Shown here in pieces: positions 1,516-51,600 of a stretch of DNA of 64,000 nucleotides. The stretch is from contig CAJINV010000001.1 in the NCBI GenBank assembly GCA_905178155.1, forward strand, positions 13,080,635 to 13,144,634. The letters run 5' to 3'. Made by a program: the position numbers and the translations under genes. Below the pieces are notes generated by a model that saw nothing but the letters and a program-made list of their open reading frames with translations, searched no databases and was not told where the DNA came from. Positions within the stretch are counted from its first letter, which is position 1, and each line of letters begins with the position of its first letter. The stretch comes from Amoebophrya sp. A120. Its lineage: Eukaryota; Protista; Dinoflagellata.

Positions 1516-4500
1516 TTACTTTTCGTTTTCGACGTTTCTACGCTTCATTTTCAGCACGCCCTGTACAAGCATGTGACTGGTATCGCCAAACGCGCGCAGC
1601 TCGCTGCGAAATCCAAGCAAGTTCACGAAGTGTTGAACTGCAGGTGCCAGTAGCCGTTCCCCTGGAACTTTGCTGTGCAGTCCTATGGCGCGCCTAACGA
1701 CAGTTTTTCTAACTATTTCAAAAATCGGTATGTAGGATGTAAAAACTATCTAGTGTAGCATCGAAGTAGCTAGCTGAGTTAGGTAGTATAGTAGGTAGCT
1801 AACACGACGCCTCCGGATGTGTGTCGTAACGCAGCGCGGACTGCCGTGCGGATTAGCGTCGGAGGCCATTTTTGTGTTGCGGAGGTGCTAATCTAGGCAC
1901 TCCCTATCCTTCAAGATTTAAGGTCGGACTGTCAACAACTACAACTCGGTGTGGTTTCACAGCTGCAATGAGAAAAAACCCGTCAATTCGGTGGAATTAC
2001 ATTTACGGACATACTCGGGGGCGAGGATTCTATTCATGGCGAGGACCTGTGGTGGAAAGTGAAAAGCTATGGTGTAGGATTTACGATCTCAAGGCAGTAC
2101 CCCAACGTGGATATTTCCCACCGAGATACCTTCTCTGTACGTGCTGTCGCTTCTACGAGTAGTACTACGGTTGTCGGTTCCGAACGAGACCAGCTAGCAA
2201 CTATTCAAAATGGGAACACTTCCACACGAAATCGAGCATGTCTCGGTAGACCATTTTTGTGCACTGATCCGGCACGAGTTCGAGATCAAGTTTATCTTCG
2301 AAACGACCAACGATTTACTCATTCGTCCTCGTGTGCGCGCTGCCCGCCCGGATGGGGAGGACAACGACTACTGGATTGGAACGCAATTGAAAAGTACTTC
2401 CGAGTGGGACGCAGCATTTAGTCGTCGTCTGCGATACATTTTGCGGCACCAGGCTGATCGCCTGCATGGCACGGTGCTGATTGGTTTGCAGTGCGACGAT
2501 ACGGAGAGACTCTTTTTGGAGCCAGTGCACCGCGTGCGCGATTATTCCGAAATTGCGATCGCGCAAAAATGCGTCTGCTTGGAGCGTCTGTGCCCCACGC
2601 TGCTGGAATTGTGGGAAAGCGACCTCACGATTCGGCACACCAACGCGAACCCTCTTCTGCTGGCGTACACCGAGGCCACCTTGATGGAGCAATCCGCCCG
2701 GGCGGCGTTCATGGACACTATTCAAGGGACGGACTTGATTTACTCCCCGCCCGAAACCGAGTTCGGAGTTGTTGACGGTTACCTCACAGACCGCACGAAT
2801 CCCGACAAGGTTTATTCCGTCCAGGAGAAGCTTCTGCTGCCGCGAAAGGAAAAATCTGTGGCACTGAATCTCCGCTGTTCGATGAAGCGGTAAGCGTATC
2901 TTTATTTTTTGTCGCCGCTGTCGATGTCCAACTGATTATGCGAACGCGGCAGCCCGACAGAAAATATATGTTGAAAAGGTATCGCGCTTGCAGTCTGCAC
3001 ATCAGTGGCGCATGACAAACGTTTCTTCCTGCTGTTGTCGATGCAAAAGTGAATGGGTTACTTTGTCAGCGCGACAAAAAAACTGTATGCAAAAGCGTCG
3101 AGCTTGTTGTAGCAGGAATTTCGCATGACAAATCTATTAAGCCGAGGCATATCAGCAGGGCAAAAATTTATCTGTGATGCTGAGCAAATTTGTGGCGTAC
3201 TGCCTGCGCGATAGTTTTTCATTACATATAAAGAACACCTCCATAATTTCATCTGTAATACAGGGCGAGCGGCGCAGCGTATGACGGCGACGCCTGTGAC
3301 TTCCTGCTGTTGCACGGCCGCACCGCACTAACCCCGAAGCAGTTCGGCGGATTACATGGCTCCGCCCTGGTGCCGTTCAAGGTGTTACAAGACACTGGCC
3401 ACGTGGCCTCCGAGCACGGGTACTATAAGCCATGTTTTTTTCATTATGTGAGTCGCAGGAAGTAGATGCGAATAAATCTAAATACCATGTACAAATTGCA
3501 ATAGGGAAAACTAACAACCCAGGCCCGGCAAAAAGACGTTAGATATTTTTCCGGAAGCGCCGGGGGTCAAGCGTCCGCGTCCTGACGGGGTTCTCGAAAA
3601 ATTTTATGTCAAAAACAATACCGAGAGCAGCTTCGCAAGCGGACTGCTGCAGATCATTTCCGACTACGAGCAGACCGAATCCCAAACGTCCAAGTCTTCT
3701 TCTAGCCAGCAACCGAACTGACGAATTTTTGGAGCAAGCGAATAGACAAACCCAAATGCCATGCTGCCACGGATGACAGCACTGGACTCGCCCAGGAGTC
3801 AATTTTTGTAGTTTTTATATTCAGGTAAGAAGTAGTGTCATTATACAGCAGCTTCACTATTTGTTCATCTGGGAGTTCCAGTGTTTTCGTTTTGTAAGTA
3901 GCTGGCTTGGGTAGTAATGAATTTCTGTCACATTTTTACACAAATGTAGTTCGGATCTCTGTTATTAATTAACAAATAATTCATTTTACTATGATTCAAT
4001 TTCTAATTGTAAAACTTACAAGCAGCGGAAGAAGTATCCAGGTGAAGCATGAAGGCCGAGGTCGTTGAGCGCTTGTAATGCAGGCTGGCATTTACATCAC
4101 GCATGACAAATAGATGGACACAATTGCAAGTGCTCTTTGCCTGGCCTCCTAGCTTCACCTGGATAGTTTTATCATCGCTGTAGAGCAGCCTGTGTAAACA
4201 TAAAAATAAAATATAGTTCTGATACCGTCGTAGTGGGTCGTTATTTTTGTGAATGTTTTCTGTACGCTGCAAAAGCGCACAGAAAACTCTTTTCTAAAAT
4301 CGGATGGTCTGGTGCTGTGCAGAAAGCGAGACTTTCTCAGTCCCGCGTTGAAATATAGTTTCACTAAAGTTCTTAAATAATATCTTGACCCATGTTTATC
4401 GTTCAGCCTTTTCTTCTTTTCAAGTCTGGAAAGAGTTTGGCATACATAGCTTCATCACCAGGTAAATCCTCGTCACTTGCAGACTCATCATCTTCATCAT

Positions 4501-7500
4501 CCTTTTTCTTTTCCGGCACGGTCTGGTCCAGCAAGGACTTCTGCTTGTTCAAATCAGCGTTGCGATTGTGTTCCGCGTCCCGGAAGGCGTCAAACTCGAA
4601 CCCCAAATTATTCGGATCATCCAGTAAGGAATCGGACGACAGTCTGACCTCCAGCCCGCGGTTCATCTCCCGCGTGCCGTCGTCTTCTTCTTCCTCAGGC
4701 TCCGGTGCTGGTGGTAGCGGCCGCAACAACAGTCCGGATTCAGCAGCGATTTCAAACGTCATGCGCGGCACCGTGATGGGGACATCCTTCATCGAGCCGG
4801 CGCCTTCGTCGACGCGGATCAGTTGGAAGTCCCCCTCCTGCAAGTCAAACTCGCAAATAACATACGGGAGGAGTTCCAGGAGCACGTTCTGCGTCACATT
4901 ACCGGTTGTCTTGCTGGTTCCGGCGAACTTCACGGTGGCCGGAGTGTAATCTCCCCAGCGGATTCGCATGCGCGCGTTGGCTTCACCTTGATCCATCCTG
5001 TGGGACGCAATCCGGGCCAGCTGGGTCTTCTTCTCGTCGGTGCGGAGAACTAGGTACGAATACGTCGCCCGCTGCCGGGTAAGCCCGTCCCGCATCGTCT
5101 GCCCTGCCCGTGTCAGACCGAGCGGTGGCTGCTGCTGCACACTGCGTCGCGACTTCTTCTTCGGTTTGGGTTGTAACTGGCCGGCGCCAAGCATAACCCT
5201 CTCCTGGTACCCACCGCTGATTTCAATCAAGTGGTCCACGAACTCTTCGTCGATTTCTTCGCCGTGTATGCAATTGCAAAAGTGGCCTCCTGATGTTGGA
5301 TGCTAAGACAGCAAATACAACAACTACCCCGCATCACAAAGTTGCGCCATATACAGATTTGTCATGCGCAAGAAGTGTGTTTGTATTGCTAGAAAAAGAA
5401 ACAAAAGGAGGCCACTTTTGCATGCGCATATGGTCGTTCAAAATTTGGAATAGCGCGAGCTTGTTGTCCGGGGACAGCAGTGCCAGGTGTTCGTCGGTGA
5501 CTCGCGGCCAGGTGTCCTGCACCCGTTTCAGCAATGCCAGCTGCTGGTCATCCGGGATGCTGGGGAACATGAGAGGCAAGTAGTCCGCCGGATCGGCCCA
5601 GAGGTTCGAGCGGAGCGAGAGGTAGGTCGGGTCGGCCTTCAACGAGGTTTTTTTCGTCACGACGCCCTCGTACATGATGAAGTCGTCGAGAATGCCGCCG
5701 CACTTCTTCGGTTCTTGATCACTATTCGGCATGCGGAACAACTTCTTCCCCACCCGGATCAACTGAATACCCATCAAGAACCCCTCCGGATCGTTTCCGC
5801 AGAAGCGATAGTGGATAGCAGCGTGCTCATCTGGAGCGTACTTGGAATACCCGACGCAGCAGAAGTCCTCGCCGGTAGCAAATTTGTCGGTGTAGCCGCG
5901 GTCATCGCCAAACCGCGCACTCATCGACATGTGCGCCTTGACCTCGAGAGCAGATTTGTAGTTGCCCTTCATCACGACGAAAGCCTTCACGCCACGGAAT
6001 CCCAGTTTATTAGCCGGCGGACAGGACCAGCTCTCGGTGTCGCCCGCGTAGTCGCACATTTTGCGGATCTTCTTTGGGAAGTTGGACGGATTGTTCCAGT
6101 TATTGTGCGCCGCCATCCGGAGATCCCTGAACGCCTCGTTGATGAACTTCTCGCGGGTAGCACCCTTTGCGCGGTCTCTCGAGTTTATCTCCATCATGGA
6201 CTTCAGGTCGCCCGCGTTGGAGTCCGCTTTTTTGCGCTTGGCGATTTCCTTGATGATGTCCTTGGTTTCCCGTGGTGTCAGCAAATACAACATCTCCGGT
6301 TTAGCGATACGGATCGGATTGTAGAAGCGGGGTTGGATGGAGGTGTGCCGGATTTTGTCCACGTTCTTGCTGCGCAAGTTGTTATCCGCTTTCTGCCCCT
6401 TGGCCTGCCGCTGGTTCTGCTCCTTGAACTGATTCTCCTGTATGAACTCCGTCAAAGGACAACTGCGCACGACCCGGACACGCCACTTTTTCAACAACTC
6501 CAGCGCTTTATCGTCCGACATTTTGAAGCAGACGTTGATGTTGGTTTTGCAGGACACAAATATGCTATGCAAAGCTTCTACTTCTGGACGACTGCAGTCG
6601 TGTTGAATTCGGGCAGAGGAAAGCAATTCATCTTTTTACGACAAAAAGATGAATTGCTACAGTCGCAATTCAACACGAGCAGCTTCTTCTAGAAGTAGTA
6701 GTTTTTCATCACGTAACGCTGAGCTCGAACACCGTCAAGTCTCCGAGCTTCGCCGCCAAGTCGCCGCTGACCGTCAGCTCTTCATTCGCCATCGATTCCC
6801 AGAGGCCGAAGCTGGGATCCGCCGTGTAGTACCACCAACAATTCACCGCGTTGACGAGGACATTCCAGGCCGGACCTTCGTGCAGCGAACTCATGTGGTA
6901 TTTTTTACAGCAATCCGCCACAAGGTGTCTCCAGGTGCGATCCCTGTTCTTCGACCGCGACAGCTGGATTTTTTCGGTGGATAGTTGCTGGTGCATTCTT
7001 GCTTCCGGGTCGATGTACCGCCGGTACGTGTTGAGCAGCGCCTGCGTGCCCAAGTTCTTGTTCGTTTTCCCGTTTTTTTCCAGGTGCAGAAGCAGCTTGA
7101 AGAACATCATGTGGCCATGCGTTACGGAGCGCTGGACGTTGAAGAGCTTGTAATCAATGTCGTACAGTTCCTTGTACATCTCCGTATGGTAACCTAACCA
7201 CCGCGGTTTCAACTTGCCGCGGTTCTCCTCGATGGTTTTCGAGATCAACAGCTCGAAATTGTTCTCTTCCAGAATCTGGGCGACCTGCTCCTTCGTCAAG
7301 TCCTGCGCTATGCTAATGAAAAGCACTACCCGATGTAGTTTTGCGCGAGCTTTTCTTTGTATAAAAATGTACATACGCATGTCATGCAGAGCAGCGTGGT
7401 TATGCCCGTGCAAACCAACATCAGGTAGTGCGTTTCAGTTGCATACTGCGGCCCTTGATCTTCTGTTTTTGGATCATCTGGCACAGAACCAGCAGCACCT

Positions 7501-10500
7501 GGTAGTAGCACTCGCTCATCATGTCCGTCCACGAATTGTCGCCGAAAAACCGCTGCTGGCTTGCGTGGAAGAAGTTGTAACCTGTGCGCTTTTGCATGAG
7601 AAATTGCAATGCCAAGAAAACCAGAAAAGCGAAATTTGAGGGAGGGCCTCAGAGGGTCCCGAGACCCCTCACGTTTTTATTGCAAAGTGGTCCAGTAAGC
7701 GAAAGCTAACCTGCATGCTATGATGGATTTCTAGAGGGTCACTAGACCCCCAGGGGATACCCCTTCGCCTTCCCCTGTCCGAGGGAAGAAAATCACGCGA
7801 TCCTCTGCATGCAAAAAGTGTGCGTTTATTTGTAGAAAAAGTATACGCTTCTCGAGGGCTTTTTCCAGACTGGGCGTCTTCTGCTCCTTCAGGCACAAGT
7901 TCTTCCATTTGAACTTGTCAGCTTCGGCTTTGTCGTTTTTCGCGATGGCCTTGCATTCTTGCTTCGCAGCCAGGAAATCGGATTGATTCTGGAAACGGCC
8001 GCACGGACCCGTAGCCCAGTCATCCCACAATTCCCGGGCCGTCGTCAACTGGGGACAGCAGTTTTTTACGTTGTTGTGCAGGCGGTGGAGGTCGCCTACC
8101 TCAGTTACCCCGGGGAGGAAGAGGTTCTGGGTAATACCCCATCGCGTTTCCGGAGTGGCTTGGTCGCTTTTGTGGTGAAATTCCATGCGGCAGCGATGAT
8201 CATCTCCGACCGTCCCCTCCATGTACTGGGTATCCATATCCCGCCAGTTCTTGTCTTTGTCGCACCACCGATCGGTGATCGCCGTGTCGCCGAACTGCTG
8301 CGGTTTTATCAATGCTAAAACAGATGCTGCACGTGTGTCCTACGTCATAGCATGCAGAGTAACATTATGCACGATGGAACTGTCGACCTCAGAAGAAGCT
8401 CACAAGAGCAGCATCTGTTTTTTCATTTTGATAATCCAATTCGTCATGTTGAGATAGCCGAGAAACTTCGACTTCGTCCCCGGAACGGAGCTCTTCAACT
8501 TACTTACACCACCGGTTTGGAACGCGCAGGGCTGGAGGATCTGGCCCATAAAATTCGGTGTGGTTGATGGAATGCCGTTGTTCGGATCGAGCGGATCGAC
8601 GTCGTCGTGGTATGTGAACTGGTATTTGTATTTAGAAATATGCAGGACTGAAAAGGGGAATGACATGCAGTTTCTCATGCAGAAAAGCAGCACAAAGAAC
8701 ATCAAGAAGAAATGCTCATGTTTCCCTCGTGGATAATATTATCCACGACGGGTGGATGAAGGTTTATACCACAGAACCCCAGGCTCCGTTTTTGCGCACT
8801 GACGAACCGTCCCCGATCTGCCAGACGTGACCGTCTCGCGATCCAAATACCAGCTCCGGGCACAACTCCTGCAGAAGCAGGTGTTCCTTATCGTCGGCCT
8901 TCTCGGATTTAAACGCGCGGCTGGATATGACGTACTCGTAGTAGCGGCGCAAAGCCGCAGCCTGATATATTTGGTGGCTGTGGTTCCATCGTGAAGAAGA
9001 TTATGCACGACGGCATCAGATCCATGCACTTTATGTGATGTCGTGCCATGCGGAATAACATCACCCACGGCGGAGTGGTACTGCTATTTGTGATGCAAAA
9101 TAACACCATCGTGAGTAAAGTGATTCACGATGGAACCACCTTCACCAAAAACATCAATTTTCTACCTTCGCTCGCAGTTTCGCATCGTCAGCTCCCATCC
9201 GACCCAGCTGCGCCTCGCCGACGCATCGAATCTTCTCTGCTGTATCCCACAGGTCTGCTGTATTGAGACCTGCGAGCTCATCCCGGTAATTACACGTGCC
9301 AAATTTTGCATAAGCAATCTCCTTTGTTTGGGTGATCCTCCACCACAGGTAGCAAAATACCTGATTGAAGTTGTAATGAAAAAAAGGATTTGTCATGCTC
9401 CATGAGTATATGAATGCATGCGGTTCGCACATCATAAAATTCATGTTTTACCCCGTCCCATTGCGATCCTTCCTTGGTTGGGTGCCAAGTAATCCCGCAG
9501 TACGTCCAGAGGTCCCGCGGCACCTGCGTGGACAACCACTTCTCGTAATTGGTCGGCGAAGGAGCCATCGACTTCAGCTTCCAGATCGGTTTGCCCGTAA
9601 ACTCCGATCTCAGCGGAACATCCCATTTAGTCGCTCGGGATTTCCGCGCAGGGCGATCGCCCTCTGGTGCCTCCTCGGCCTCCGAATCCGACTCGGAGGA
9701 TGACGAGTACTCGACCTCATCCAGCACATCGTCCTCGGGTTTGAGGACCGGGTCTAGCTGATGAACAGCTCGTTGAGTTCGTGTAGCACCCGGGAGCACG
9801 AAATCAGCTCTGGCCACAGCTGCGGGCGGAGGACGTTGGCGTTGTTTTGGAGCGGGATGTGCTGCCTGTTGGTAGACGGGAGGCCCCGCAGGAGGATGCA
9901 TCTCTCTGTTCTTCAAACTAGAAGCATGCTTACTCGACGATCATCTATACGTGCGGAAATAGCAAGCTGTGGGACCTGGAGTGTCTGTGTGACAAACTGC
10001 GCTCGCCTTCTTCAAATCCATCTCTCGCAGTGCGTGCGCTATCTCTCCGTCTACTTCGAGACCTGTTTACGAGCCCCACGATTATATCATTCGTTCGACC
10101 GAACAGCGCAAACAACTACACAACCGACCTTCAGCCCATTGCAGTGTGTGCTCCATCTTTCGCACGCCTGCTTCGACCCTGTCTACGATACAACCGACTA
10201 TCTGACACTCGCATCCGAACAACAGGTACAGCCTACACATTCAACCTTTTTTATCTGGTTCTTTGCTCGCAAGCACACTTCAATGGATTCATACGTGCGG
10301 ACTCAGATGCGAAATCTACATTTGTTCGTCGTGAAGCTTGTTCTTGATTCCAACATCATTCGTCAAGGAAAGGTAGTTCGACGCCTCACGATTAATTCAT
10401 TGTTGATCGCTACAGGTAGAAAGCCGACAGCGGACGCGACCAGCCAGCTGCCGGACCAAAGAGGAGGTGGATTTCACAGTAATGGTTATTACAACGAAAT

Positions 10501-13500
10501 TGTTTGAATTTTAACAAATAAATTCATTATTTTTTTGTGTAGTCTTCAGTAGTAATCGCCAGCTTTCTGCGCATTAAGCTGGCGATAAAATATGGAATAA
10601 TTTTTTATTCAAAATAACATATATTTTAGTCTAGTGAAACTTCATATGTGGAACCACCAGTGTAAAGATCGATTCAAAACTGTTATGGTTGGCAAAAGGG
10701 AGAGCGTGTCGGTTCTTTGCTGGCGAGAATACAAATCTGTCATGCTGGCGGGAATACAAATCTGTCATGCGTAAAACTATTGAACCAGCATAGCACCGAC
10801 GCGTTCTCAAAGTCACAACGTCGTATTCTGGTGGAACCACAGAAACATAACTCGCGTTTGACCGACCCTAATCACTTCTTCTTCATCGACATCATCTTCT
10901 TCATCGCCTTGGAGGTAGAAGCGGTGGTCGAGGAGGCGCGCGACGCTTTCGCGGGGGTCTTGCTCTTCTTGTTCTTCGCGATCTCCTTCTCCAACTTCTT
11001 CTGGAGCTTCTCCTTCTCCTTGAGGGCCTTGGACTTGTCTTTCTCCTCCTGCAAGACCTGCTTCTCCAACATCTTGCTCAACGTCTCGTTCTCCTTCTCA
11101 ATCTCCTCGCGGGCCCGCTTGTCCGCGGACGACGTCATGAAGAACTCGACAAAGGACTCCTGGTCCGCCGGCTTCAACACGGACATCAGCGCCTCCGCGA
11201 ATTTGTCCTTCGGGGTGACTTTGGTGGAAGCGGGCTGTCAGTGAGTAATTAGTGATGGTTGGAAGATGCATATGCACAAATACACCGATGCCACGGATCC
11301 GTGTGCGTTCATTACAACCATCCGTGCACTCGCAGGGGCGAGTGCAGGGCTTTCTTACACGCTACTCTACAAATGCTCTCCTAATTACTCACGCAGTACC
11401 TTCTTCTGGTTGTCGATGATGTTCAAGGAGTGCTTCTTCCCGGGGGTGATCGGGTCGTCAAACTCGAGGGTGACGGGGTCGACGTCGTCGTTGCCCTTGG
11501 GGGTGGCAATGAGACCGGTCTTGCCGACGGACTTGCGCAATCCTTTGGCCAGTTTGTCCTTGTCGGCGACGACCTCGGTCTTGCCCGCGCCGAACTGCTG
11601 GCTCGCGGACTGCACGGCGGCATTCGAAGCCATGAAAACCTGTGTGTCAGGTTTGATGTGTATGTTGGAATCAATACGTTGGACAAATGAAGTTGCAGTG
11701 TCCATTTCACAAACCGAATAGTCTACAGCTGTTTCTCTTGCCGTAAAACCGAATGTAAAAAACGAAGGTAATAAAGCTGTGCCGTGCCGTTCGGTCCGGG
11801 GGTCATCTGCACCATCTGCTGTCCGTTGGACATCATGTTGGGACTCGGCGCGAACTGCAGTCCGTACGGAGTCATACCCATGGGGGTCATGCCGAAGTGA
11901 CCGGGGGTCTGGCCGGGCATCATCACACCCGGGGTCGCGGTCATCGACACGCCCTCCATGCCGGGGGTCCGCGTGGTCTCGGCGTACTGCGCACAGCTGT
12001 CGAGCTTGGTGATCACGCACTTCTCGGGCGCGGGGCACATCTCAACGACGATCGTCCACTGCATCTTGGAGGCAATACGCAATATAAAAGTATCGCGCAG
12101 TGGCAATTCTATCAACAATTTTTCGCAACATCAGAAGACGAGTTTGCAATGCAAATCTTCGACGTGATGATGATCAGTCGTGCAAGGTTGTAATGCTTAA
12201 CAGTGCGATACTTTTACACAACATAACCGGCCAGGGCCAACAACTTCACGACCTGCTGCAGGTGGCGGAACTTGGTCTTCGAGCATTTCTGGATGACCTG
12301 CAGTTGAGATTTTGGTGTGGTTGCATGCGGGTACTGTGGAGCTACGTCCTTGAAAAACGTCTGTCTTTGCAGTAGCACTAATTGAAGTTAAGAAACCGAC
12401 ACGGAGCACGGACCTTCTGTACAAGGCGCGCAAGACAACATCACTATACAGCAGCAAAATACCATGTCGATCGGGATCTTCATCTTCACCAAGATGTACT
12501 TCCACTGCGCGACGGAGTACACGTAGCGGGCGACGTACATGACATTGCGGTGCATCAGGGTGCTCAAGGAAACCTGGACGATCTCGATGGGCAACTGGCC
12601 GAAACCTGATTTGATTTCGGGAAGATATCGAATGTGAATAAATGGTGCTGGTTTGTTGTGCCAATTAGTCATGCTAACTAGACCACGCGCGTTTTGCATC
12701 TTTGTATCAGAAACCTGCATCACATCAGTGCTTATCGGTGCCAGATAATGCAACACAGACTAGCGTGCCAAGAGATAGGCTCAGCTGGACTTTCAAACGC
12801 AAGCATGCCAGAGGTGGTTTTACAAAACACGCGTGGACCGAAGAATCAAACACAACTACAAGTCAGAGCCACAATTTCCTATCAGAATATCGTGTAATTG
12901 TAATAAAACAAAACAACAACGTATACGCTCGAGGGTTCCCGGAAAGGCCTGACGGGACAGGCTGCACATGGGCACGAAGTTCTCCTCCTCGGCATCAAGC
13001 TCTTCATCAAGTTCAGAAAACGCATCTCTGAAGAGTTTCAGATCAGCGCGGCTGGGCTTGCCGATCTTGCCCTTGACGAAATCCATCGCAGAGTAAGTCT
13101 TCGGCATTTTGTGTTTTGGTGTTTTGGAGCAGATGCTCGAGGAAAAAACAACTCTCAATTTATCCCTACGGTTTTCGGTTTGATTGGAAGATTAGTTTCA
13201 GAACGAAGAAGAAGCACCACATGACGCACAACAAGAAAATGAAAATCAGTACAACGTGATGACTTCGGAGGGATCTTTGCAGAATTTTATCAGCGGGGTA
13301 GTTCGGGGTTGTGAAGGTATAGAAGTTGGCTTGTGTTGAACAGCGTTTACTAATCAAATTGCACACATCTATCGCGCATCGCAGTGCTTTCATTCGCTTC
13401 TCAATCTCATTGATTTACTTTCGCGTGATCGCAGAACTCAAAGTCGCAACGTTCCTGTTTTTCAGCTGTGCATAATGATGACACAAACATTCTCTTTTCA

Positions 13501-16253
13501 TCTCATGCTCAAGATCTTCTACAATTCCACACTCCTCTTCACATCACCATCTCCTCCAACTGCAACAGGTACTTGTGCTCCGTGGACTGGCTGGTCAACC
13601 GTTACGACACACATCCGGAGGCGTCGTGTTAGCTACCTACTATACTACCTAATTCAGCTAGCTACTTCGATGCTACACTAGATAGTTTTTACATCCTACA
13701 TACCGATTTTTGAAATAGTTAGAAAAACTGTCGTTAGGCGCGCCATAAGTCCTTGACCCACTTGCAAAAGGAGGAAAACCTTTCTTTCATTTTCTATTTC
13801 TTCATTTTCTCCGCTTTTTCCCTGCGATGTAAATGGAGATGAGGGCCGTGTTGCGGCCGAAGACGTCGTGAGAGGTGCACTATCTTGCTCCTCGCATCGG
13901 TTTCTGTCTTTATCCGAAAAATCTTCCGCGCTTTCACGCGTGGCCGTGATCTGTTTACTCTGCGTGGAGTTCTTCTGTCGTCTGCCAACCTGTCGTGCGA
14001 TCTCCGCGACGATGGCGATACGGGCCTCGGCGCAATTGTGGTGATGTAGGTCCAAGACCTGTGTTGTCCGCACGCCATCGCGTTTCGTTCGGCTCACCAC
14101 AAACTCGTAGTACCCTGGACCTCCGCCCGACGAAGTACCAGGACCAGCCCCATCAGGCGTAGGCGTCATAAACTCTCGCTGGTGCTGTGGCGCTTTGCAG
14201 CTCTCGCGATTCGCTTCATCTTCGGTCGCCTTCACCACAGGTTCATCTTGTCTTCTGGTCTGCAGCCGCGCTTTCAGGTCCTGAAAAGTGCGATACCACG
14301 CCACCGCTGTTTCCACGTCGCCAACTGCATCCAGCAATTCCAGCAATTTCGAAAGCAGCACATGATCGACAATCTCCGCGTGGTCGGCCAACCTGCTTGC
14401 CAGATAACGCGTCACGCGACGAAGCTCGCGCAACTGCAGGTCGTTGCAGGCTTCCTCGGTGGTGCCGTCCTCCACCTCCCCGGCATCATCCTCGCCTGTT
14501 ATCGCAGCGAGGTAGGGCTCGGCCTTGGTCGGATAAACAGAGACGCCAGCTTCTCGGGAACGCACTTGAGACATCGTAGCCGCATCGTGCAAAAGTGAGA
14601 ACAGATGCGTGAACCCCCATGCAGCTGTCGATCCGGTGTTGCCTTTGTGCCCAACATCGGCATTTTTTCCGGAAAACAGCAGGCACGGGGGAGAGGACGT
14701 TAGCTCGTGTGTCTTGTCAACATCAGGATTCTGCAGCAGCGTGTTTCTTGGGCCATGCGGCTCATGTTGACCATCATGATCTGGCAGATGCAGCTTGTCA
14801 TCAAACTCCGCCTCATTATCACTGTTTTCTTGATCCAGAAATGACCAGTCACTCTTCAAAGCAATCCTAACCGCGTGCTTCCACTGCGACGGCGCGAAGC
14901 ACTGGATGAGCGTGCTCAAGGTGACTTGGTCGAACAGCTGTTCCTCTCGACGGCGAAGTTTGTAGCCCTCTGCTCGAAGGAGCTGTAAAGCCCCCTTGCT
15001 GTCGCGCTGGCGCGCGAAAAGCCTCAGCATCGTATTCAGCGTGACCACGGAAGGATCGAGGGACAGCTCGTGCTTCATGCGCGCGAATATCCTCGTCGCG
15101 GACTCTTCGTGCCCGGGCTGCCGTACCACGGCGGACAAGACCGCGTTCGCCAAAACCAAATCCACTGCGCTCTGGGTTACCGCGTCCTCAAACAGGCGAA
15201 GCACACCCGGGGCGTCGTCCACAAGATCGAGTGCTTTTGCCACGGAAGTGTACAGTTGCGAACTGGGACGCACCTCCCGACAGGTGCTGTACCGCGAGCG
15301 AAACTCGTGAAAGTAACGCAAAGCCAGTTTGGCCTCCTTCCCCTGCACACATTTTTGAATCAGCGCCCCGTACGTAACAACGATGCCCGACGCGTGCTCC
15401 GGGCACAGCTCCTGATTGTGAGTCGTGACGGAAATGATCTCTGCACTAATGGACGTGGTCTCGTCGGGGGCATTTGTCGCTGTGTCGCCGAAAAAATTAT
15501 TCTCGGCCGGCAACGACGAGGGTGCCGCGTCTGGTGTGCTACTGCTCGCAGATCTGGGGACCGGCAAACGACACCGTATTTCCAGGTCGAAGACCCTGGT
15601 CGCGTCTTGCAGAGGCAGTGCGTTGAGAGCGGCGCTGAAGCAATGGAAGCTAGCGCCGGCGTTGGACAGCTGCATTTGCAGGAGCGCTAAAATGCTCTCT
15701 GTTTGACTCGTTGTTTTTTCCCGCCCCAGTGCCCGTATCGCGTACGCGGTCCACTTATGGATTGCAAAAATGTCTGGGTCTGGAAGAATTCATGTTTGTC
15801 ATGCTTGTCTGGCATGACTCTTAAATCTGCCATGCACGCTACCCAAGAGCTCCATTTTTCTGCGATGCAGGAACGCAGTTTGTCATGCAGAATAGGCAAC
15901 ACCTATAAGCTCAGAAACTTGTCATGCTGAGCCAGCACTTGTGGCCTCATCATGAGACGCCACCCAGCATCACAAGTTTCCAGACCCAGACACTTTTACA
16001 TTTTATACCACTTGCGACTGAGTGGCTCGGGACGCCGGAGAAAGACAAGCGACTCGACAATGGCCTTGCGCAGCCGGTGAATCGACACGCGCTTGTTCTG
16101 CGGAGAAAGCGCAGCCTCTGCGGCAGCGGACAGGGGCAGCTGCGCCTCGTCGTGTAGTGCGTGCGCATTGCCGGGAATGCCTCGCGCCTGCACACCACGA
16201 TACACATAATGAGGCAAGGATTGCGATTGTGCCGGTCGTGCGACGTGTCTCAT
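1516..16253 (-). CDS. PPR-like repeat plus C-terminal Smr domain protein (PPR-SMR); exons ~16253-16008, ~15750-13748, ~1678-1516
   Basis: PPR-like units (VVTYGALIQKC, PSSQLYTSVAKAL, PSVVTLNTMLRLF, DQVTLSTLIQCF); Smr N-terminal motif VLDLHH. Removing 1684-13747 plus one TSD gives LLLQVGQGLHSKVPGERLLAPAVQHFVNLLGF...ENEK*. Removing 15756-16007 plus its repeat gives SRKWTAYAIRALG...LQMQLS. Start codon uncertain. Confidence 0.85.
1684..1831 (+). repeat. Left TIR of the 12-kb element
   Basis: Reverse complement of 13600-13747, one mismatch seen (ctgagtt vs aattcag); rich in GTAG/TAG words. Confidence 0.96.
2210..3721 (+). CDS. Tandem PD-(D/E)XK-like nuclease-fold protein carried by the transposon; exons 2210-2889, 3264-~3447, possibly 3543-3721
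   Basis: Two E...D...(Q/E)xK-like modules (NDLLIRPR...WIGTQLKST; GVVDGYL...SVQEKLL). GT-AG intron 2890-3263 joins in frame to RASGAAYDGDACDFLLLH...ALVPFKVLQDTGHV. The last exon needs a 1-nt shift near a T run at 3435-3441. Confidence 0.6.
4403..9916 (-). CDS. Divergent hAT-like DDE transposase, ~1400 aa, 9 exons (9916-9452, 9360-9166, 8961-8770, 8618-~8434, ~8306-7847, 7581-~7447, ~7307-6713, 6591-~5431, ~5266-4403)
   Basis: Five GT-AG introns and three TIR introners join the ORF pieces in frame. Motifs appear in hAT order: TTF-zinc-finger-like W...DGVFCYLW, CAFQTGG, GTVGDDHRCRM, GDLHRLHNNVKN, QQRFF, LSVTRPEVEALHS. Start uncertain. Confidence 0.7.
5267..5430. mobile_element. Introner (164 bp) nested in the transposase gene
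   Basis: TIR tatgcaattgcaaaagtggcctcct / aggaggccacttttgcatgcgcata; removing 166 or 169 nt joins ORF 5334-6626 to ORF 4403-5239; direct repeat degenerate. Confidence 0.85.
6598..6678. repeat. 81-bp fold-back (MITE-like) element inside GT-AG intron 6592-6712
   Basis: Outer arms tcgtgttgaatt / aattcaacacga, inner arms gcaattcatctttt / aaaagatgaattgc; GCAG on both flanks. Confidence 0.8.
7309..7445. mobile_element. Introner (137 bp) nested in the transposase gene
   Basis: TIR tatgctaatgaaaagcactacccgatgt / acatcaggtagtgcgtttcagttgcata; removal as GT-AG (139 nt) or GC-AG (142 nt) keeps frame. Confidence 0.85.
8307..8433. mobile_element. Introner (127 bp) nested in the transposase gene
   Basis: TIR tatcaatgctaaaacagatgctgc / gcagcatctgttttttcattttgata; removing 129 nt gives NWKPQQF; no clean direct repeat. 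Confidence 0.75.
10719..10770 (+). repeat. 25-bp tandem duplication containing the introner motif
   Basis: gctggcgagaatacaaatctgtcat gctggcgggaatacaaatctgtcat gc. Confidence 0.8.
10872..13107 (-). CDS. Unknown ~430-aa protein carried by the transposon, with a Lys-rich coiled-coil C-terminus; 6 exons
   Basis: GT-AG introns 12606-12926, 12298-12462 and ~11235-11399 join in frame: MPKTYSAMDF...RFGQLPIEIV...VIQKCSKTKF...MTPMGMTP...KAMKKMMSMKKK*. Two junctions are approximate. Confidence 0.7.
12076..12225. mobile_element. Degenerate introner (AAAAGTATCGC family)
   Basis: tacgcaatataaaagtatcgcgcagt / acagtgcgatacttttacacaacata; same TIR core as 51750 and 55608; separates two coding exons. Confidence 0.65.
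13600..13747 (-). repeat. Right TIR of the 12-kb element
   Basis: Reverse complement of 1684-1831. Confidence 0.96.
15756..16007. mobile_element. Introner (252 bp), TSD CCACT, in the PPR-SMR gene
   Basis: TIR tatggattgcaaaaatgtctgggtctggaa / ttccagacccagacacttttacattttata; CCACT at 15751-15755 and 16008-16012; removal restores frame. Confidence 0.92.
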
Positions 16254-18318
16254 TGCGACGGCGGAGGCCGACGAAAAGAAGCGAACTGTGGTCGTCGTGC
16301 GGGTGCGGCTTCACGATTGCATGCCCATCATGTCTGAATATCGCAGCGAGTCGCGGAAGTCGTGCAATCTTTCTTGTGCCATGATTCTCCTGGTGGTCCC
16401 ACCCTTAGAAGGTAGTAGGAGATGCAGAAGATGACATCATTGTGTAGTCCTTTTTCTGTAAGAGAGTGACGAGAGGACAGCTTAGATTTTATCTTTAATG
16501 AATGTACTTGTTAATTCCTGACTCTACTCCGACATTCGAAAAACTGTCAGTAGGAGACAGAGTACTCTACGTGCCAGGCACATGCGTTATCGTGTTCACA
16601 ATCACGACCACAGCCTTCGTGGCAATGGCGCCTAGTCAAAACTTCTTCACAGATAGATGATTGTCGAACCGCAAGTACCAGAGACAATGGCGGAGACAAC
16701 TACAAACATGTATGTATAATTTATTACGACATCATGAGCTCAAAATGCTGCTGGAAAAAGAAGACCGAGGACGAGGTGAAGCCTTTTCGTCTACTTTGCT
16801 TTTGTTGGATCTACTCTGTCCTTTCCTGAAAAACCAATGATCAACTTCAACACGACCAATATCTGCATCACACGCTATGCCAACAAAATTCCGCAAATCC
16901 GAGCTGTATTGCGTATTTCTATTTTCCTGTGGCGAGAGAGCCGATAACTGATGATGGTATTACTAACCGTGCAAAAAATCTAAGAAGTACTGATATGACA
17001 GCACCAGGTTGGGGACACGAAAGCGAACCGACGAAAATTCAATCTTGTTCTTGGTTGCATGTACAACTACGTACGCGGCTATGTAATGAGTTCCCAGCTT
17101 TCTTCCACCAGCAGCCCTGCAACTCCAGAGGGGACAATCGCGTAGACAGAGCAGATCGAAATCATCGAGATGGATCACTGCTTTTTTAACTTTCAAGTTC
17201 AACTCCGCAGGCGCAAGCACAGGCGAGAACATATGTCACGAGCGGGCGAGGATCTTGTTTTTAGTTTAATCAGGAGGAACACCAACGAGTCTCAATCTTG
17301 CGGCCTCCCTCTGTGCCGCTTAGTCCACAACAGTGCTGATGTTGGGTCTGCTTCTGCTAAAACTAGAAACGAAAAAAGGAGAAAATTTGTAAATCAAAAA
17401 GCAGCCACTTGAAATGATCGTCTGGTCTACGATAGCATGCGCGAAGTGACTTTTATAGCGGGGAAGTAAAGCAAGTCACTAATGCTGACAACATTAGTTC
17501 GTCGTGATGAATGCGTACCGCTATGAGTAGCGCTCCACCAGATTTTCCGAGTACTATTAGTAGCTCTTCCCATGATTGCGTAAAGGCTGATGTAGTTGTC
17601 AAAGTTTTGTTTACAAGTACAAAAGTAGATACAACCAAACGCGCATGTCGGTGTTGTCGCATAGTCCTCGTGGTCAAGGTCGTGCAACAACTGCTTCGTT
17701 GAACTACCACTCATGTGTGCCATGCCAATTTGGTTCAAAATTGCTGCACCATAGTGGAGGTCGTCCAGTTTTCATCTAGCATAATAGTCCTGAAATCTGG
17801 CTGTGGCTTATTTGTCCGTCTACCATCTTCCGTCAACGTTCTGAAAAAAACGTAAGCAGAGTAGATGCAGAGCGGATGCTCGTGTATTTTCCATGTCTGG
17901 CTTGTGGAAAACGAAAACGAAAAGTCAGCCAGAGGACGGTGAAGTTGAATGTTGCGATGGCACAAGAAGTTCCATGAAAAATGTTATATCTTTTTGTTGT
18001 TGTTCTGCTTCAGAAGCTCTCAAAACAATCTCGTCGTATTCGTAATAAAGCATATATCAAATGTCAGCTCCCTGCCTCCTGCGTGTTGAGGCGTTCGGTT
18101 CATCGCGCGCGAAGTTTATCTTCGATATCAATCGATTTTCCCCTCCTCGTCGCTCGGGGTGAAGATGAGTCGTCTAGCAGTGCCGAGAAATGAACGGGCT
18201 TTCGTCTGCGGAACTACTTCTACGTCCTGCTGCCACGGATCATTCCCGTAGATACAACTGCTGGTCTTCATCCTATCAAACAAGAACTGGAAATCACTGT
18301 AATTTTGCGTCGAGTCCA

Positions 18319-36337: not shown

Positions 36338-39300
36338 TCATTCCTCATCGTCGTCACTGTCAAGTTTGCCAATGCCAGCGCGTCGAATCCGCCGCTGGCG
36401 AGCCTTTTGTCGTTCTAGCTCCGCTGGATCCCCTACCTCGCTTGACGAGGCACTGGAATTATTGCGATCGGCGCCAACAGCTCCCGTGGCTTGCTGGAGA
36501 GAACTACGGTCTTGGAGGTTCATGTCGTACGAATGGTTCGCCGTGCCTTTAGACCTCTTGAAATTGAACACCGGCTCGTCGTCGCTGTCGCTATCATCTT
36601 CATTGTTCTGCAGCTGTTGTGCGCGCTGGCCCTGCCGCAACATCCGACGCGCCGCGCGATTGGACGCCGGAGGCAAGAAGTCGCCGGAAGAGGCCGTGGG
36701 AGCAGGACGCGTTGCATTTCTTGAGGCAGCAGCCCCCCCAAAATCCATGTTTTGTTCCATGAACTCCAGGTCCCTTCGCAGCTCTTCCTGCTCCCGCCGC
36801 TCTCGTCGACGGCGCTTTTCTCTCTCTTTTTCTTTTCGCCTTTGTTTGTCCTCGGCGTCAACCGCATGCTGCTGGTGCTCTCGTTTGCGCTTTTGACTGG
36901 TTGGCACGGCTGGAGCAACGAAAGCTTCATCGCCATCTTCGCCATCGAAAAGGTCGATATGCTCATTCAGCTGGAGGGATTTCTTGTCTTTTGACCTGTC
37001 GGCGTTCTGCTCATCATGTGCAGATGAATGTCGCGCCCTTTTTGCCCTTTTCTCCTTCTCCTGCGGCTCTTTTCTAGCTGTTCTTCGCCGCTTCTTGTCG
37101 CTAATTCGAGCCTCATCCTCCTCATCAAGTGCAGAGATTACGGGCTGACCACCGCGGGAGCTGCTACTTATGTGGTACGACTGCCCGGGCTTGAGAGGTT
37201 TATTCATTTGTCGCCTCGTCGTTCGTTCCAGTTGCTCGGCAGTTTCTGCTTCCCTTGCGCGCTCCTCCAGCTCCAGCTCTTCCGGAAAAGCGAAGTTTGG
37301 ATCCGCGATAGAAGCAGTGCCGAGTTGGTGCAAATGCGTGAACCAGTCCCGGAAACCTGGCTCCTGCTCGGTGCGAATATTTGCCCACAAATCTGCACTC
37401 GTGGCGGATTGCGCTTGCTTCAGCCAGTCTTTGCGCATGCTGCGAAAACTTGCGTACTTGATGACTGCCGGCGGTGGGGCTGGTGCAGCAGGTGGATTTC
37501 GATTCTCTGACATCTGGTGCACAACTTCTTGATCAGTCGCCAAGAGTTTGCCGGTGCGGCTTGCTTCACGGCGGCCTGGTTGTTGAAGTTCATCTTCGTT
37601 GGCTGCTCCCACTACGCTCGCAAGGAAATTAGAAAGCAGGTCGGCTGATCCGCCCGCTGCATCGCTATTTTGATCGACCAGGGAAGCAGGCGCCTTGTCC
37701 TCCCTAGTCTCACCTGAATCCAGTAACGCAAAAACTTCGTCGACCTCATCGTAGGAGCGCTGCGATGACGGAGCAGGTGCAGGTGCGGTCTTCTGACTCT
37801 GGGGAGTGCGTGATGTTGGTACCGATTCGGCGCTGCCTTTTCGTGTCTTCTGCGGTCCTTTGTTTTTCCCGCGAAAAGAAGAGTCTTGATCTTGCTCCTG
37901 CTTGTCGTGCTTCTCTTGTTGGTGCACATGTTCATTTCCGGCTTTCGCCGAGGCGGGCCCTGGCTGCAATCTTGGGCTTCGTTTGACCTCTCCGGCTTCC
38001 AGAGCGGCGAAACCTTGCCGAAAGAACGCGAGTCCTCGCTGCTCTGCGCTGTCTTCCATCTCTTCCTCGGAAGATTCTTCCGCTCCTTCCTTGCTTCTTT
38101 CGCCGTGATGTGCAGCTTTGCTGCTGCTTCGCGGACGTTGGTGTGAGCTCGCATCTTGGTTGGATTTTTGCCCGCGGCCTGCTCCGGAAAAACCTCTTCC
38201 TGCTGAGCCTGGACTGCCGCCTGCTGGACTCTCACCATCTCCTGTACCACCCGCCTTGTTACGGATTGTTTCAAAGAGCTTTTGTTTTCTCTCTTGCTCT
38301 GACAAACCCTGAAATTGTTTGCTATTCGCAGGCTCAAAAAACAACGACGGCTTTTTCTGCTCCGCCTCACTTTTCGCATTCGCGGAACGGTCTGCGCCGG
38401 GTCCGGCACCGCCCTCTTGCACATGCTTCGACTTTGATGACGAGGACTTTGCAGCTCGGCTACGTTCGTTTACGGTAATTCCGGCACCCGCATGCGTCTT
38501 TTGATGAGTTGCGGCTCCTGCATTCCCCTTGACCACCTTGCTCGACGTACTTGCAGCAGCTAATCCTCCCGTCAGCTTGTTGTTTTGCTCCGCGGATAAA
38601 TTGGACTGAGACTCGTCTACTTTCGGAAACGCGTTGTCGCCCCAGGCTTTCCGGATTTCCTTCACGAAAGCCGCCCGTATTTCCGCTGTCTTTGCCGCTT
38701 TCTCTTTCGCCAGACGTGCTTGTTCTTCGGCTTCTTGCTCCGCGGTCTTGAGCTGTTGAAGATACCTCCGATTAGGAGGACCCAGCGGAGCCTGCTGTTG
38801 ACTCGGAAAAGCCCCCCCGGTAGCTGTACTCGCAGTCGCAGTCGGATTTACTACTTTCGTGCCCCTCAGCTGGAAGAACTTAGGTCCCCCAATAAATGCG
38901 CTTTGGGCGGCGGAACTCGTCGTGCTGGTTTTCCGGAAAATTTCGGCGAAGTCGCTGTTGATCTTGTACACCAGCTCGGAGTCCACGGCCGCCGGGTTCA
39001 CGCGGTTGGACTTGGGCAAGCCCTCGAGCATATCCCAGAGAAAAAAGCTGGCAGGGCATATTTGTAATGCAAAAATAAATACACACAGAAACTTGTCATG
39101 GGTGGCCCATAGCATGGTGTTTCGGATACGCAATACAGATTTTTTTGTGTGTTTATTTTTGCATTACAAATATGCCGTGCCCGCTTTTTTCTGTGTGATA
39201 GAGCAACCGGCCGAGACTCCGGACCCACTCGTCCTCGTCCCGGACCGCGGCGTCGATGATGCGCACGAGTTTTTTCGCCCAGGCCGCGAGGGTGGCTCGC

Positions 39301-48631: not shown

Positions 48632-51600
48632 TTATTGCACTGGAGCGCGGCCCCGCGTTGGCGCGGCAAAGACGAAAGGTATCCTCGGCGCCAGCACGGA
48701 GCCCACACAAAGTCTTGGCGCGCCCGCCGGTGGCTGGTGGGCCTGGAGCATGGCTTGTCTGGTTGCAACCGGTACCGATGCGGGTACGGCACTGGCTGCG
48801 AGGATTGTGTTGCTCCTTATCGAAGCGCTGGACCTAATCTGCATCGACTGACTCAACGGCTCATTGCTCGAGAAACTGCTTGTCGTCGTGGTGATGTTGC
48901 ACGCGTCCGCAGCCTGTGGTATGGCTGGTCCGGCAGCACCTGCCGCGGCACTAGCGGTAGTCCCGGGCGGAATCGCCGTCACGCTTGTCTTTATCGGAGG
49001 TCCGTGGGCTGGCCAGCCCGACGGCATGCGAGTCGGCGACGGCAGTGTCACCGCGGCCGACGGGGAGAACGGTCGGAAATTCGTTTGGCCGAGCGGACTG
49101 TGGCGGGCACCACTTCTGCCACTACCGGGGACGATCCTTCCAGGCGATGGGGACGGATTCAGTTTCCCGCTCACACTCCAGCTTGGGCGCGCACGCTGCC
49201 ACTGTACGCCGCCTGTCCCTGAGCTGAACGGCGGTTGCTGCGGCGTTATGATACCCGAGGTCTCTTCAGACTTCGGTGCTTGTTGCTGCGGCTGCTCGTA
49301 AATTCTAGAACTTGGAACAGTCCCCTGACCTGGTTGCTGCTGCGTCACTGCTCCTCCAGCTCCGATGGTGGGGACCAACAACTTTTGCGCCGGTATCATC
49401 TGCGCTTGCGGGGGCTGCCCCCCAGCTCGTGTTGCAAAGCCGCGGAGCCGGTGACTCACCGAACTATACGGTGAATGGTGCCAGTAGCACACACCGCGCT
49501 TCAAACTCGCCTCGCGAGAACAATTGTTCGAAGAGGCCAGTCGTCGAGTCGCTCCAGCGGTGCTGCTCTGCGACGTGCCGCGAGACACCGCACCGCTGGC
49601 GACCGCTGCGGAGGACGTCATGCCGGTCACGACGCGATGGGTCGTGCTGGGCGGTGGCCGGCCCCGTCCGCCGACCGTGGTCCCGGTCAGCAGTAAATTT
49701 CGGTGCAGCGATCCAGTTGTCACCACAGTCGTAGTTTTCGTTGCAGCTTGGGAGAAAAGACGCTGAGCTTCGATTCTTCCGCTGGAGGAGGATGCAGAAC
49801 TCGTAGTTCCCGACGGCTGCTGCTTGTTTTCATCTGAGCTTGATGTTGAGAAATTAGCATTCGCACTCTTTGATTTCTCTTCTGCCAGCAGCGGGACTCC
49901 ACCAGCGGAGCATGCGTTAGCTGGCAAAGTTTCCCTCGCGTTATTTTCGACAACTCTGGCGGCGTCCGTGCTCGTCGTCTGAGGGTCCTTGGTCTTTGCA
50001 GTGGTAACCGTGCTAGTACTAGTGCTCACGGTTTTATTCCGGGTTGTGGTCGCGCGGTCGCACTTCTGCGAGGGGTTCTGTAAGTCACCGGGAGGAGGAG
50101 GTGAGCCACTGCTTATTGCGTTTTCCTCCTGCAGCTGCTTCGTTTTTTCTCCTCCTGCCACACAGGCCGCCGCGGGAAACGTGCGCCGCTTGGTTCTGGT
50201 CACCGACGCGGATGCGTATCGCTGCTTGTGGTCGAGAAACTTTTCGTATCCTGTGCAAAAGTACTAATTGCAGTTATGCATGACAAATGCCCTTTCCAAT
50301 GTAAAACAGCAGGACAAATTCAATTTTTCATGCTGAGAAAATTTGTAATGCAATTTATACTAGTACGATGCTTTTGCAATTCATATTTCGAAGGGGGTGC
50401 CGATGTCCGGTTGGCGGGGCCCGAAACCTCCACGCTATGGAAGTGTCATAATCGAAATGGAAATTGGCAAAATCGAAAAATTTGTGATGCACAAAATCGA
50501 TGCCAGTTGGAGCCTCAGCTTCCAAGTGGCGCATGACAAATTTCGGGAGCACCCAAATCCAGTCTGTCATGCTGTTTGGGCAAAGAAGGCTGCTCCTGTC
50601 ATGCTACTCTGGCAGCAGATTGCATACCCCTAATCAGGCTTACAATCGGTCTCATGTGCCTGCTCCCCAATACAGGCCTTCAGTGCTTTACATTCTACGC
50701 ATCGCAACGTTTTCGATTTTGTCGATTTCGATCCTGACACATCCATACACGCGGCACCGGCGTTATTGGAGGCAAAACCCGCTCACCGCGCCAGGAAAGC
50801 GCGCGCTTGCACGGCATCACGGGTTCGTGCAACAGTTGAGGGAACGGCGGCGGAGGCTTGATCGTAAAGACGTGCTGTGCAAACAGTATGAAGAGAGTGC
50901 ACGTAGCGAAACTGATGTTGCCAACGCAAGGTTCGTGAAATCAACGAAAGGAGCACACGTCACTTTTGTTTTTGACAAGAAGGGACCATCACCATCAGCA
51001 AGTTCTTGTCGTGCAACAAATCACATAACATCATACTTACCGTCGTGCGATGCACTTGTTTCGCAGGACCGCAGGGTGCAGACTCCTCCCGCTTGCAGCT
51101 TGCACGGTTTCCAATGGAAAAGTTCGGCACGCGCCAGCCCCGCGTCTCGGAGGCAGCACGACTTTGCGCAGCCGCGACGTGAAGCAGTAGCGGTTTTTCG
51201 GCTTTTGGACTCGAGCAGCTCACCAACGACCCCACAGTTGAGAAGGGAGGAAACGGAATCTTACCCACAGAAGCACGCGTTTGCGTGATGTTTACCTTGG
51301 AATTCGGTAACGTCGTGTTTCCCGGAGAAGGTGAACCTTTTCTCAGAGCAGCCGCGGGGGGCTCCTGAAGAGTAGACGAACTGCTGCTAGTATTCGTCGT
51401 TCTTGCCCATGGTCGTTGCTGTCGTAATTGTTGAGTTGCGGCAGCACCCATATGGAGTTCTCAAATGTTACATTCTCAACTGTTATATGATTTGTCATGC
51501 AAAATTGCAATCCCAATCAGAATTGACACGATCAAGCTGCTTCGCATGACAAACTCCCGAAGAGCCAAACAGGCTGAGAATCTGCGCCAAATTTGTCATG

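Follow-up and report, generated by a model that had tools for sequence, protein, structure and literature searches.

A 12,064-bp gene-carrying transposon interrupts a coding exon of a pentatricopeptide repeat (PPR) gene of Amoebophrya sp. A120 and is removed, together with one copy of its target-site duplication (TSD), from the host transcript. The locus lies in a 64,000-nucleotide stretch of contig 1 (13,080,635-13,144,634), referred to here as the window, and positions are given in window coordinates unless a contig is named. The genome-wide searches covered the 115.5-Mb A120 genome. Overall, the observations are probably best explained by a recent insertion of a large transposon into the PPR exon, which is spliced from the transcript and belongs to a family tied to introners and so far seen only in Amoebophrya.

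Structure of the Insertion and the Host Gene

The features of the element, to which no strand is assigned, are as follows:
1679-1683, left TSD, AGTCC (sequence reading)
1684-13747, transposon, 12,064 bp (inverted ends and duplication, protein and RNA joins)
1684-1831, left terminal inverted repeat (TIR), starting TATGGCGCGCC and carrying the subterminal motif CTATTTCAAAAAT (repeat finder)
13600-13747, right TIR (repeat finder)
13748-13752, right TSD, AGTCC (sequence reading)

The features of the host gene are:
16008-16253, minus strand, exon 1 (tblastn of the NCBI protein)
15751-16007, minus strand, 257-nt small introner, consisting of an element at 15756-16007 with TAT...ATA ends and the duplication CCACT (RNA contig)
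13748-15750, minus strand, exon 2, carrying the PPR repeats (protein match, RNA contig)
1516-1683, minus strand, last exon, 55 codons plus the stop codon at 1516-1518, including the left duplication copy (tblastn)

The initial annotation had described 148-bp TIRs and a 5-bp TSD around 12,064 bp at this site, and both the coordinates and the repeats proved to be as described. The two arms of the element are 148 nt each and complementary at 147 of 148 positions, with the sole mismatch at arm position 95. Because the arms are so nearly identical, we infer that the window copy is a young insertion. With the neighbouring base included, the direct repeat is 6 nt long (AGGACT on the minus strand). 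The element interrupts a long host open frame, leaving 679 codons on one side and 55 on the other, and it is almost certainly a real transposon insertion. An assembly artefact would be the alternative, and we give it a negligible probability: misassembly does not create 148-nt inverted ends with a perfect 5-bp duplication, and five sister elements with the same architecture are present at other loci.

Considered as an intron, the insert has inverted repeats at its 5' and 3' ends and a direct repeat of 3-5 nt (AGTCC) over the exon/intron boundaries. The element and one duplication copy together make up 12,069 nt (3 × 4023). The initial annotation had pointed to this multiple of three; the arithmetic is right, but it carries no evidential weight, since the original frame returns whenever an insertion is taken out along with a single copy of its duplication. 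As AGGACT is repeated on the minus strand, the intron can be placed in seven equivalent ways (AG..AT, GG..TA, GA..AG, AC..GG, CT..GA, TT..AC and TA..CT), and none of the seven gives a GT-AG, GC-AG or AT-AC boundary. The GA..AG junction of the initial annotation can indeed be drawn, but it has no special standing among these non-canonical placements.

NCBI lists the same host protein, at 100% identity, as an 'unnamed protein product' of Amoebophrya sp. A120 (P0001, 803 aa). The intact 55-codon last exon anticipated by the initial annotation was recovered, with the coding positions 1683 to 1519 matching P0001 residues 749-803 at 100% identity by tblastn. The minus-strand sequence of exon 2 terminates in ...GGTCAAGGACT, and that of the last exon begins with GGACTGCACAGC. 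The earlier description of the host as a PPR-SMR gene was borne out in its first half: the PPR repeats were matched among the PDB sequences (phmmer E 1.6e-21) and also by Pfam. The Smr domain had no match in Pfam at E ≤ 10 or among the PDB sequences, and its putative assignment comes from the LDLHH...GQGLHS motif.

Of the words sampled from host exon 2, 8-10% were present in two metagenome runs, X9 (estuary) and X10 (marine), and these matches may represent environmental relatives of the A120 strain.

Removal of the Element from the Host Transcript

Across the insert, P0001 reads VGQG followed directly by LHSKV (...LLLQVGQGLHSKVPGERLL...), with the passage over the join being ...FLLLQVGQGLHSKVPGERLLAPAVQHF... 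and the protein terminating in ...RRNVENEK. Since P0001 spans the insert, the connection of exon 2 with the last exon is already part of the published gene model, and the intron was thus present in the NCBI gene model before the present analysis. The published A120 gene models were produced with a transcript-based prediction pipeline (PMC7789003).

RNA coverage was examined over 10601-16600 in four runs, of which run X1 consists of Logan contigs. A run X1 contig of 2,373 nt covers 16124-16008, omits the 257-nt intron at 15751-16007 and continues over 15750-13748. It then extends 253 letters beyond 13748; the 30 nearest of these, AGTAGCCGTTCCCCTGGAACTTTGCTGTGC, are window positions 1649-1678, and the full 253 correspond to 1426-1678, running beyond the stop codon. 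The transcript join at 1678/13748, which is equivalent to 1683/13753, removes 12,069 nt. The depth in run X1 was 0 over 10601-13600, with no RNA contig in the right 3 kb of the element, and no read-through from exon 2 into the arm was found among the run X1 contigs, with the caveat that assembled contigs drop rare transcript forms. In the bin 13601-13800 the depth of 4.3 is that expected from 53 exon bases at a depth of 16.3. The 257-nt small introner skipped by the same contig serves as a positive control for splicing; its plus-strand ends are CC..TA with 6 ambiguous letters, a boundary of the same kind as that of the 12-kb intron. Run X1 was taken as RNA because of the zero depth over 10601-13600 and the skipping of the 257-nt intron.

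The insert is therefore absent from the mature mRNA and has non-canonical boundaries, as seen in the RNA contig, in the protein and in the seven placements. The splicing from the host mRNA that the initial annotation had suggested was upheld by the protein that spans the insert and by the contig joining 13748 to 1678, and we have high confidence that the 12,069 nt are removed at the RNA level.

The same joined mRNA could be transcribed from element-free DNA, present either through polymorphism in the culture or through a precise, ciliate-like DNA excision in some nuclei. The removal of the element with one duplication copy would restore the empty site exactly, as such an origin would have it. 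The assembly, however, contains the element; the 257-nt introner, although present in the genome, is missing from this RNA contig as well; and thousands of such elements are present in the DNA and absent from the RNA of this organism (PMC7789003). In addition, unspliced cells bearing the element should make RNA running from exon 2 into the arm, of which no contig was seen. We regard element-free DNA as an improbable source of the join.

A plain knock-out insertion, in which the unspliced element truncates the host protein, is less probable still. An unspliced reading of exon 2 would end ...GQGLMARLTTVFLTISKIGM* within the arm, as a knock-out would need, but the spliced contig is present, the read-through contig is absent and the protein in the annotation corresponds to the spliced mRNA.

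A Family of Large Elements in the A120 Genome

The arm of the window element has no other copy in the genome, its terminal 24 nt are likewise unique with up to 3 mismatches allowed, and its interior gave only ~100-bp matches at 71-78% identity elsewhere at the DNA level. With ends and interior both single-copy as DNA, the insert does not belong to a group of similar introns repeated across the genome. The genome-wide TIR search recommended at the outset thus returned no further copy with these ends, and relatives were found at the protein level instead.

Three genes of the element, designated A, B and C, have protein paralogues at six other loci, with 26-63% identity over the matched stretches. 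For gene B, the two longest open pieces matched other loci at 38-49% identity (E down to 1e-95), with weaker matches elsewhere. More distant relatives of the large copies were hit on contigs 1 (at 11.47 Mb), 2, 12, 16 and 34. Between copies, protein similarity reaches E 1e-102 while there is almost no similarity at the DNA level, which argues for long purifying selection. The large-element lineages are old, with synonymous sites saturated and the proteins retained. The order A, B, C is the same in the closer copies, and by translated comparison the more distant copies match in part.

In 20 kb examined around each of the six paralogue loci, five were found to be bounded by inverted repeats, for which the identity of the two arms to each other is given:
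contig 14, arms of 148 nt with 82% identity, span 11,152 bp
contig 1 at 1.45 Mb, arms of ~150 nt with 77% identity, span 11,759 bp
contig 22, arms of ~150 nt with 77% identity, span 11,739 bp
contig 17, arms of 405 nt with 99.3% identity, span 18,041 bp
contig 6, arms of 201 nt with 98.5% identity, span 11,438 bp

These five sister elements have TAT...ATA termini, start TAT(A/G)(A/G)C and are flanked by the 5-bp duplications CTTTA, ATGCT, GTTCA, TTTGT and AAAGA. With the window copy included, each of the six large copies has its own, different 5-bp duplication, which is the structure of a TIR (class II) transposon. A subterminal ATTT(T)CAAA motif ~35-45 nt from the end is present in five of the six, including the window copy; the contig-17 copy has the looser GAATTTCAC in its place. 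So far, the family is found only in Amoebophrya.

All three genes are also present on contig 3 (10749001-10769000, genes at ~4271-14852 within that stretch), where no inverted ends were detected within 20 kb. One piece of this seventh-locus copy has two in-frame TAG codons, and it may be a decayed element.

Genes Carried by the Large Elements

The genes of the window copy are:
2204-3667, plus strand, gene A, in blocks 2204-2890, 3262-3441 and 3521-3667 (translated comparison)
4406-9940, minus strand, gene B, multi-exon, ~1,300 aa, with open pieces at 9293-9940, 8742-9083, 8403-8738, 7734-8339, 6712-7434, 5337-6635 and 4406-5302 (open reading pieces, paralogue comparison)
11400-13128, minus strand, gene C, kept in the closer copies (translated comparison)

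Gene A is conserved in all copies. The alignment of its block 1 shows a conserved D..(F/L)IRP, then (I/V)QLK(S/A) and, later, VDG.L...QEK. An AlphaFold2 (AF2) model of block 1 (predicted local distance difference test (pLDDT) 73.5, predicted template modelling score 0.62) has an alpha-beta-beta-beta-alpha-beta core, with helices (H) and strands (E) at H7-22, E26-30, E38-42, E56-65, H70-83 and E91-96. In the motif D..IRP...QLK, the D lies before strand 2 and QLK in strand 3. Structural comparison with VIA-align matched the model to I-Ssp6803I (Z 8.3, root-mean-square deviation (rmsd) 3.3, 116 residues aligned) and to Hjc (Z 8.2, rmsd 2.9, 105 aligned), and the top rows were nearly all PD-(D/E)XK, restriction-endonuclease-like proteins. 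Foldseek gave weak matches (E 0.04) in the same direction, including the DUF4365-type nuclease of SPARDA, and Pfam matched DUF4365 at E 0.015 in 1 of 8 members. We accept a PD-(D/E)XK fold for block 1, the product being a putative nuclease. The protein search gave no homologues of gene A within its length range.

In Tn7-type transposition, TnsA is a nuclease of the restriction-endonuclease fold, and a 5-bp duplication is produced. The window element is similar in having a 5-bp duplication and in encoding a nuclease of predicted PD-(D/E)XK fold, with a QxK variant of the motif. It differs in that TnsA was not among the top 50 structural matches, that no DDE TnsB-like or AAA+ TnsC-like protein was detected, and that it is eukaryotic and intron-containing; it is not a member of the Tn7 family.

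The conserved stretch of gene B in the translated comparison runs from ~9727 down to 4556 on the minus strand. In wide protein searches the homologues were limited to two, one of 1,306 aa in Amoebophrya A25 (CAD7963427.1, P0003) and one of 1,161 aa in AT5.2, and neither these nor the gene B pieces had a match in Pfam, NCBIfam, PHROGs or PDB. The middle part of gene B was poorly modelled by AF2 (pLDDT 47), and a structure search with its confident part gave nothing better than a small beta-barrel at the noise level of Z ≤ 5. Global alignment of the exon pieces with the full-length homologues was scattered and was discarded. Scores of 0.75-0.77 for the element proteins in the protein Atlas were at chance level.

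Several assignments were tried and rejected. The hAT superfamily was rejected as all six copies have a 5-bp and not an 8-bp duplication, and as no hAT, BED or other Pfam match at E ≤ 10 was obtained in the gene B pieces or in the homologues P0003 and P0004. An invariant H..SDQG.PE.R motif in gene B resembles integrase cores by eye only; profile tests gave no support, and an rve/integrase reading was dropped because of the wrong spacing and the lack of Pfam or PDB-profile support. Polinton/Maverick and viral readings were rejected in view of the lack of matches to protein-primed DNA polymerase B or other polymerases, rve integrase, capsid, packaging genes and ATPase, and of a duplication of 5 bp, not 6.

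The A25 homologue is annotated as a single 1,306-aa protein, and no A120 copy is present in the protein libraries. It is possible that A25 expresses the family and that in A120 it is silent or masked.

Small inverted-repeat elements at 5267-5430, 6567-6709, 8311-8427 and 8963-9156 fall exactly into the gaps that separate the open pieces of gene B. In the contig-1 paralogue (1589-3337 of its fetched stretch, minus strand), the counterparts of the pieces 6712-7434 and 5337-6635 form one open frame. Because the matching pieces are one open frame there, gene B of the window copy seems to have been colonised by small introners.

Relationship to Small Introners

In the window, seven small inverted-repeat elements have both TAT...ATA ends and a perfect 5-nt duplication, so that the match between the ends of the 12-kb element and those of the small introners, noted initially, was confirmed. 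The start TATGGCG is common to the 12-kb element and the small element at 114-564, as had also been noted; the general feature is the TAT...ATA ends with a 5-nt duplication.

A closer connection was seen for the contig-17 copy. The first 42-47 nt of its arm match many genomic sites at 83-98% identity (244 first-look candidates, 65 scored matches), many of them as inverted pairs 200-320 bp apart, and its terminal 44 nt are common to dozens of the listed sites, in elements of ~250 bp. Two such pairs were inspected and are 253-bp elements with the duplications AGAAG and TCGTC; the continuity of open frames across these small elements was uninformative as the exons are short. The window elements at 114-564 and 51451-51691 have related ends, with 33-34 of the first 45 nt agreeing with the contig-17 end. 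Because the terminal 44 nt of the contig-17 copy recur in many ~250-bp elements, we infer that at least some families of small introners have their protein-coding counterpart in the large family.

Matches to the contig-17 arm also include copies on contigs 4, 3 and 1 that have lost internal sequence. At contig 4:8003732-8004528 and contig 3:3022696-3023454, two ~400-nt arms of the contig-17 type stand back to back, with 90-97% (contig 4) and 74-75% (contig 3) identity to the contig-17 arm; both resemble derivatives of the 18-kb element from which the interior has been deleted. For the contig-6 copy, the sole derivative found is ~600 bp long (contig 3:10327685-10328287), with two ~190-nt arms that show 78-82% identity to those of the contig-6 copy. 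No derivatives sharing ends were found in the genome for the contig-14 copy or the window copy. The relationship of long coding copies to short derivatives is thus established at the level of the family, though not for the window copy.

The initial annotation had regarded the window element as one of an autonomous class that mobilises small introners. A large gene-carrying class tied to small elements by shared termini (the contig-17 ends) was indeed found, and the chances that this family supplies the transposition proteins for small introners appear evenly balanced. The window copy itself could not be sustained as a mobiliser, as its own ends occur nowhere else in the genome, and it is very unlikely to have mobilised any small introner. 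Its genes have no recognisable transposase domain.

Proposed Mechanism and Its Weighing

We propose that a large DNA transposon of cut-and-paste type recently entered a coding exon of the A120 PPR gene. Its family is characterised by a length of 11-18 kb, inverted ends of ~150-400 bp starting TAT(A/G)(A/G)C, a subterminal ATTT(T)CAAA, a 5-bp duplication and three genes. The host gene would survive as the element and one duplication copy (12,069 nt) leave the transcript at non-canonical boundaries, as small introners do. The two arms, with a computed duplex energy of -279 kcal/mol, may pair in the pre-mRNA and bring the exon ends together despite the 11.8 kb between them, and whatever machinery splices hairpin-bounded introners would act on the paired arms regardless of the length between them. 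Genes A and/or B may carry out transposition. The window copy is tolerated in a gene because it is spliced.

A number of points weigh against this explanation. The RNA support comes from a single assembled contig of a single run, which was taken to be RNA on the basis of its behaviour, and this contig may derive from the same data as the annotation; three raw RNA runs of 2026 gave 0, 2 and 0 reads on 10601-16600 and were uninformative. Hairpin-guided splicing would be an extension of a proposal made for small introners (PMC7789003). The element's own ends are single-copy in the A120 genome, and only the window copy of the six sits in an evident exon; as the five sisters do not, the family is not specialised for genes. 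No A120 copy of gene B was present in the searched protein library (no self match), and gene C was without RNA contigs in run X1; the element genes are probably unannotated and may be silent. Finally, the element genes gave no transposase, integrase or recombinase match in searches of Pfam, NCBIfam, PHROGs, the PDB sequences and the Atlas, and 'autonomous' therefore stays unproven for the element.

This last result bears directly on a second interpretation, in which the transposon is spliced but non-autonomous: its three genes would be cargo or have other roles (for example, as a repair or defence nuclease), and an enzyme of the host or of another element would move the large and the small elements alike. 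The lack of a transposase-like domain in any element gene in the profile searches, the position of these genes outside the annotated proteome and the single-copy state of each lineage would fit such an arrangement. On the other hand, the three genes have been retained in one order inside inverted ends despite saturated DNA divergence, the pattern expected of needed genes; internally deleted derivatives exist in two lineages (contig 17 and contig 6); and a PD-(D/E)XK nuclease is plausible as a DNA-cutting component. We consider a non-autonomous element a less probable but serious alternative to the proposal that genes A and/or B act in transposition.

A broader and tentative view, which we would put forward only as a possibility, is that the 11-18-kb elements may constitute an unrecognised superfamily of eukaryotic DNA transposons (a PD-(D/E)XK nuclease plus a novel ~1,300-aa protein, with no DDE, tyrosine or HUH enzyme), which would mobilise the TAT...ATA, 5-bp introners and whose arm-paired, length-independent removal from RNA would extend to at least 12 kb.

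Comparison with Described Introners

The Amoebophrya introners described by Farhat et al. 2021 have inverted repeats of 8-20 nt, direct repeats of 3-5 nt and non-canonical sites; the introns analysed were of 40-1000 nt and the mapping limit was an intron of 10 kb (PMC7789003). No DNA-transposase genes were found in A120, introners were described without internal transposase genes, and two putative transposases were reported in A25 only (PMC7789003). The 12-kb insert shares with these introners the terminal inverted repeats, the direct repeat at the boundaries, the non-canonical sites and the exact removal from mRNA. It differs from them in its length (12,069 nt versus 40-1000), its arms (148 versus 8-20 nt), its three genes and its single-copy DNA.

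Autonomous transposons acting as introners were reported by Gozashti et al. 2025, including TIR-flanked A120 families that bear open reading frames, such as 'family 38' (PMC12130899); autonomous introners, in A120 among others, are thus already published and the concept is not new. As in those cases, a protein-coding TIR transposon serves as a working intron in the window, and coding and non-coding relatives coexist. The open reading frames of family 38 show homology to integrase-like regions of Copia/Gypsy, and the family has several copies that are nearly identical; most introner families are unclassified (PMC12130899). In contrast to family 38 as described, the window family has no integrase homology and its copies are deeply diverged; an overlap with the unclassified families is possible.

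As summarised in PMC7789003, the introners of Micromonas and Aureococcus (Huff, Zilberman and Roy 2016) are short, non-coding and non-autonomous, with canonical splice motifs. To the extent of that summary, they resemble the 12-kb intron in arising by transposon insertion with a target duplication that helps to define the intron boundary, and differ from it in that the 12-kb intron admits no canonical dinucleotide pair.

What is new relative to the described Amoebophrya introners is the far larger size, the single-copy state, the very long arms, the lack of a recognisable transposase and the ties to small elements. The window locus and its five sisters provide concrete candidates for a mobiliser, bounded by inverted repeats, with conserved genes and the end signature of the small introners. 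Since a 12-kb insert with 148-nt arms is removed at non-canonical boundaries, recognition must use the ends and not the intron length or internal signals.

Small Elements in the Window

Small inverted-repeat elements of the window and their duplications include:
114-564, GAACG
15756-16007, CCACT (the spliced control intron)
39031-39200, GAGCA
51451-51691, ACCCA
55234-55548, CCTCG
55608-55757, TCTGC

Within the 257-nt control intron, short run X1 contigs at a depth of 24-57 cover 15823-15985, some with several differences from the window, and are probably other copies of this small-introner family in RNA. A dense cluster is present at 50457-56399, where at least seven small inverted-repeat elements lie within 6 kb, several of them with TAT...ATA ends and 5-nt duplications.

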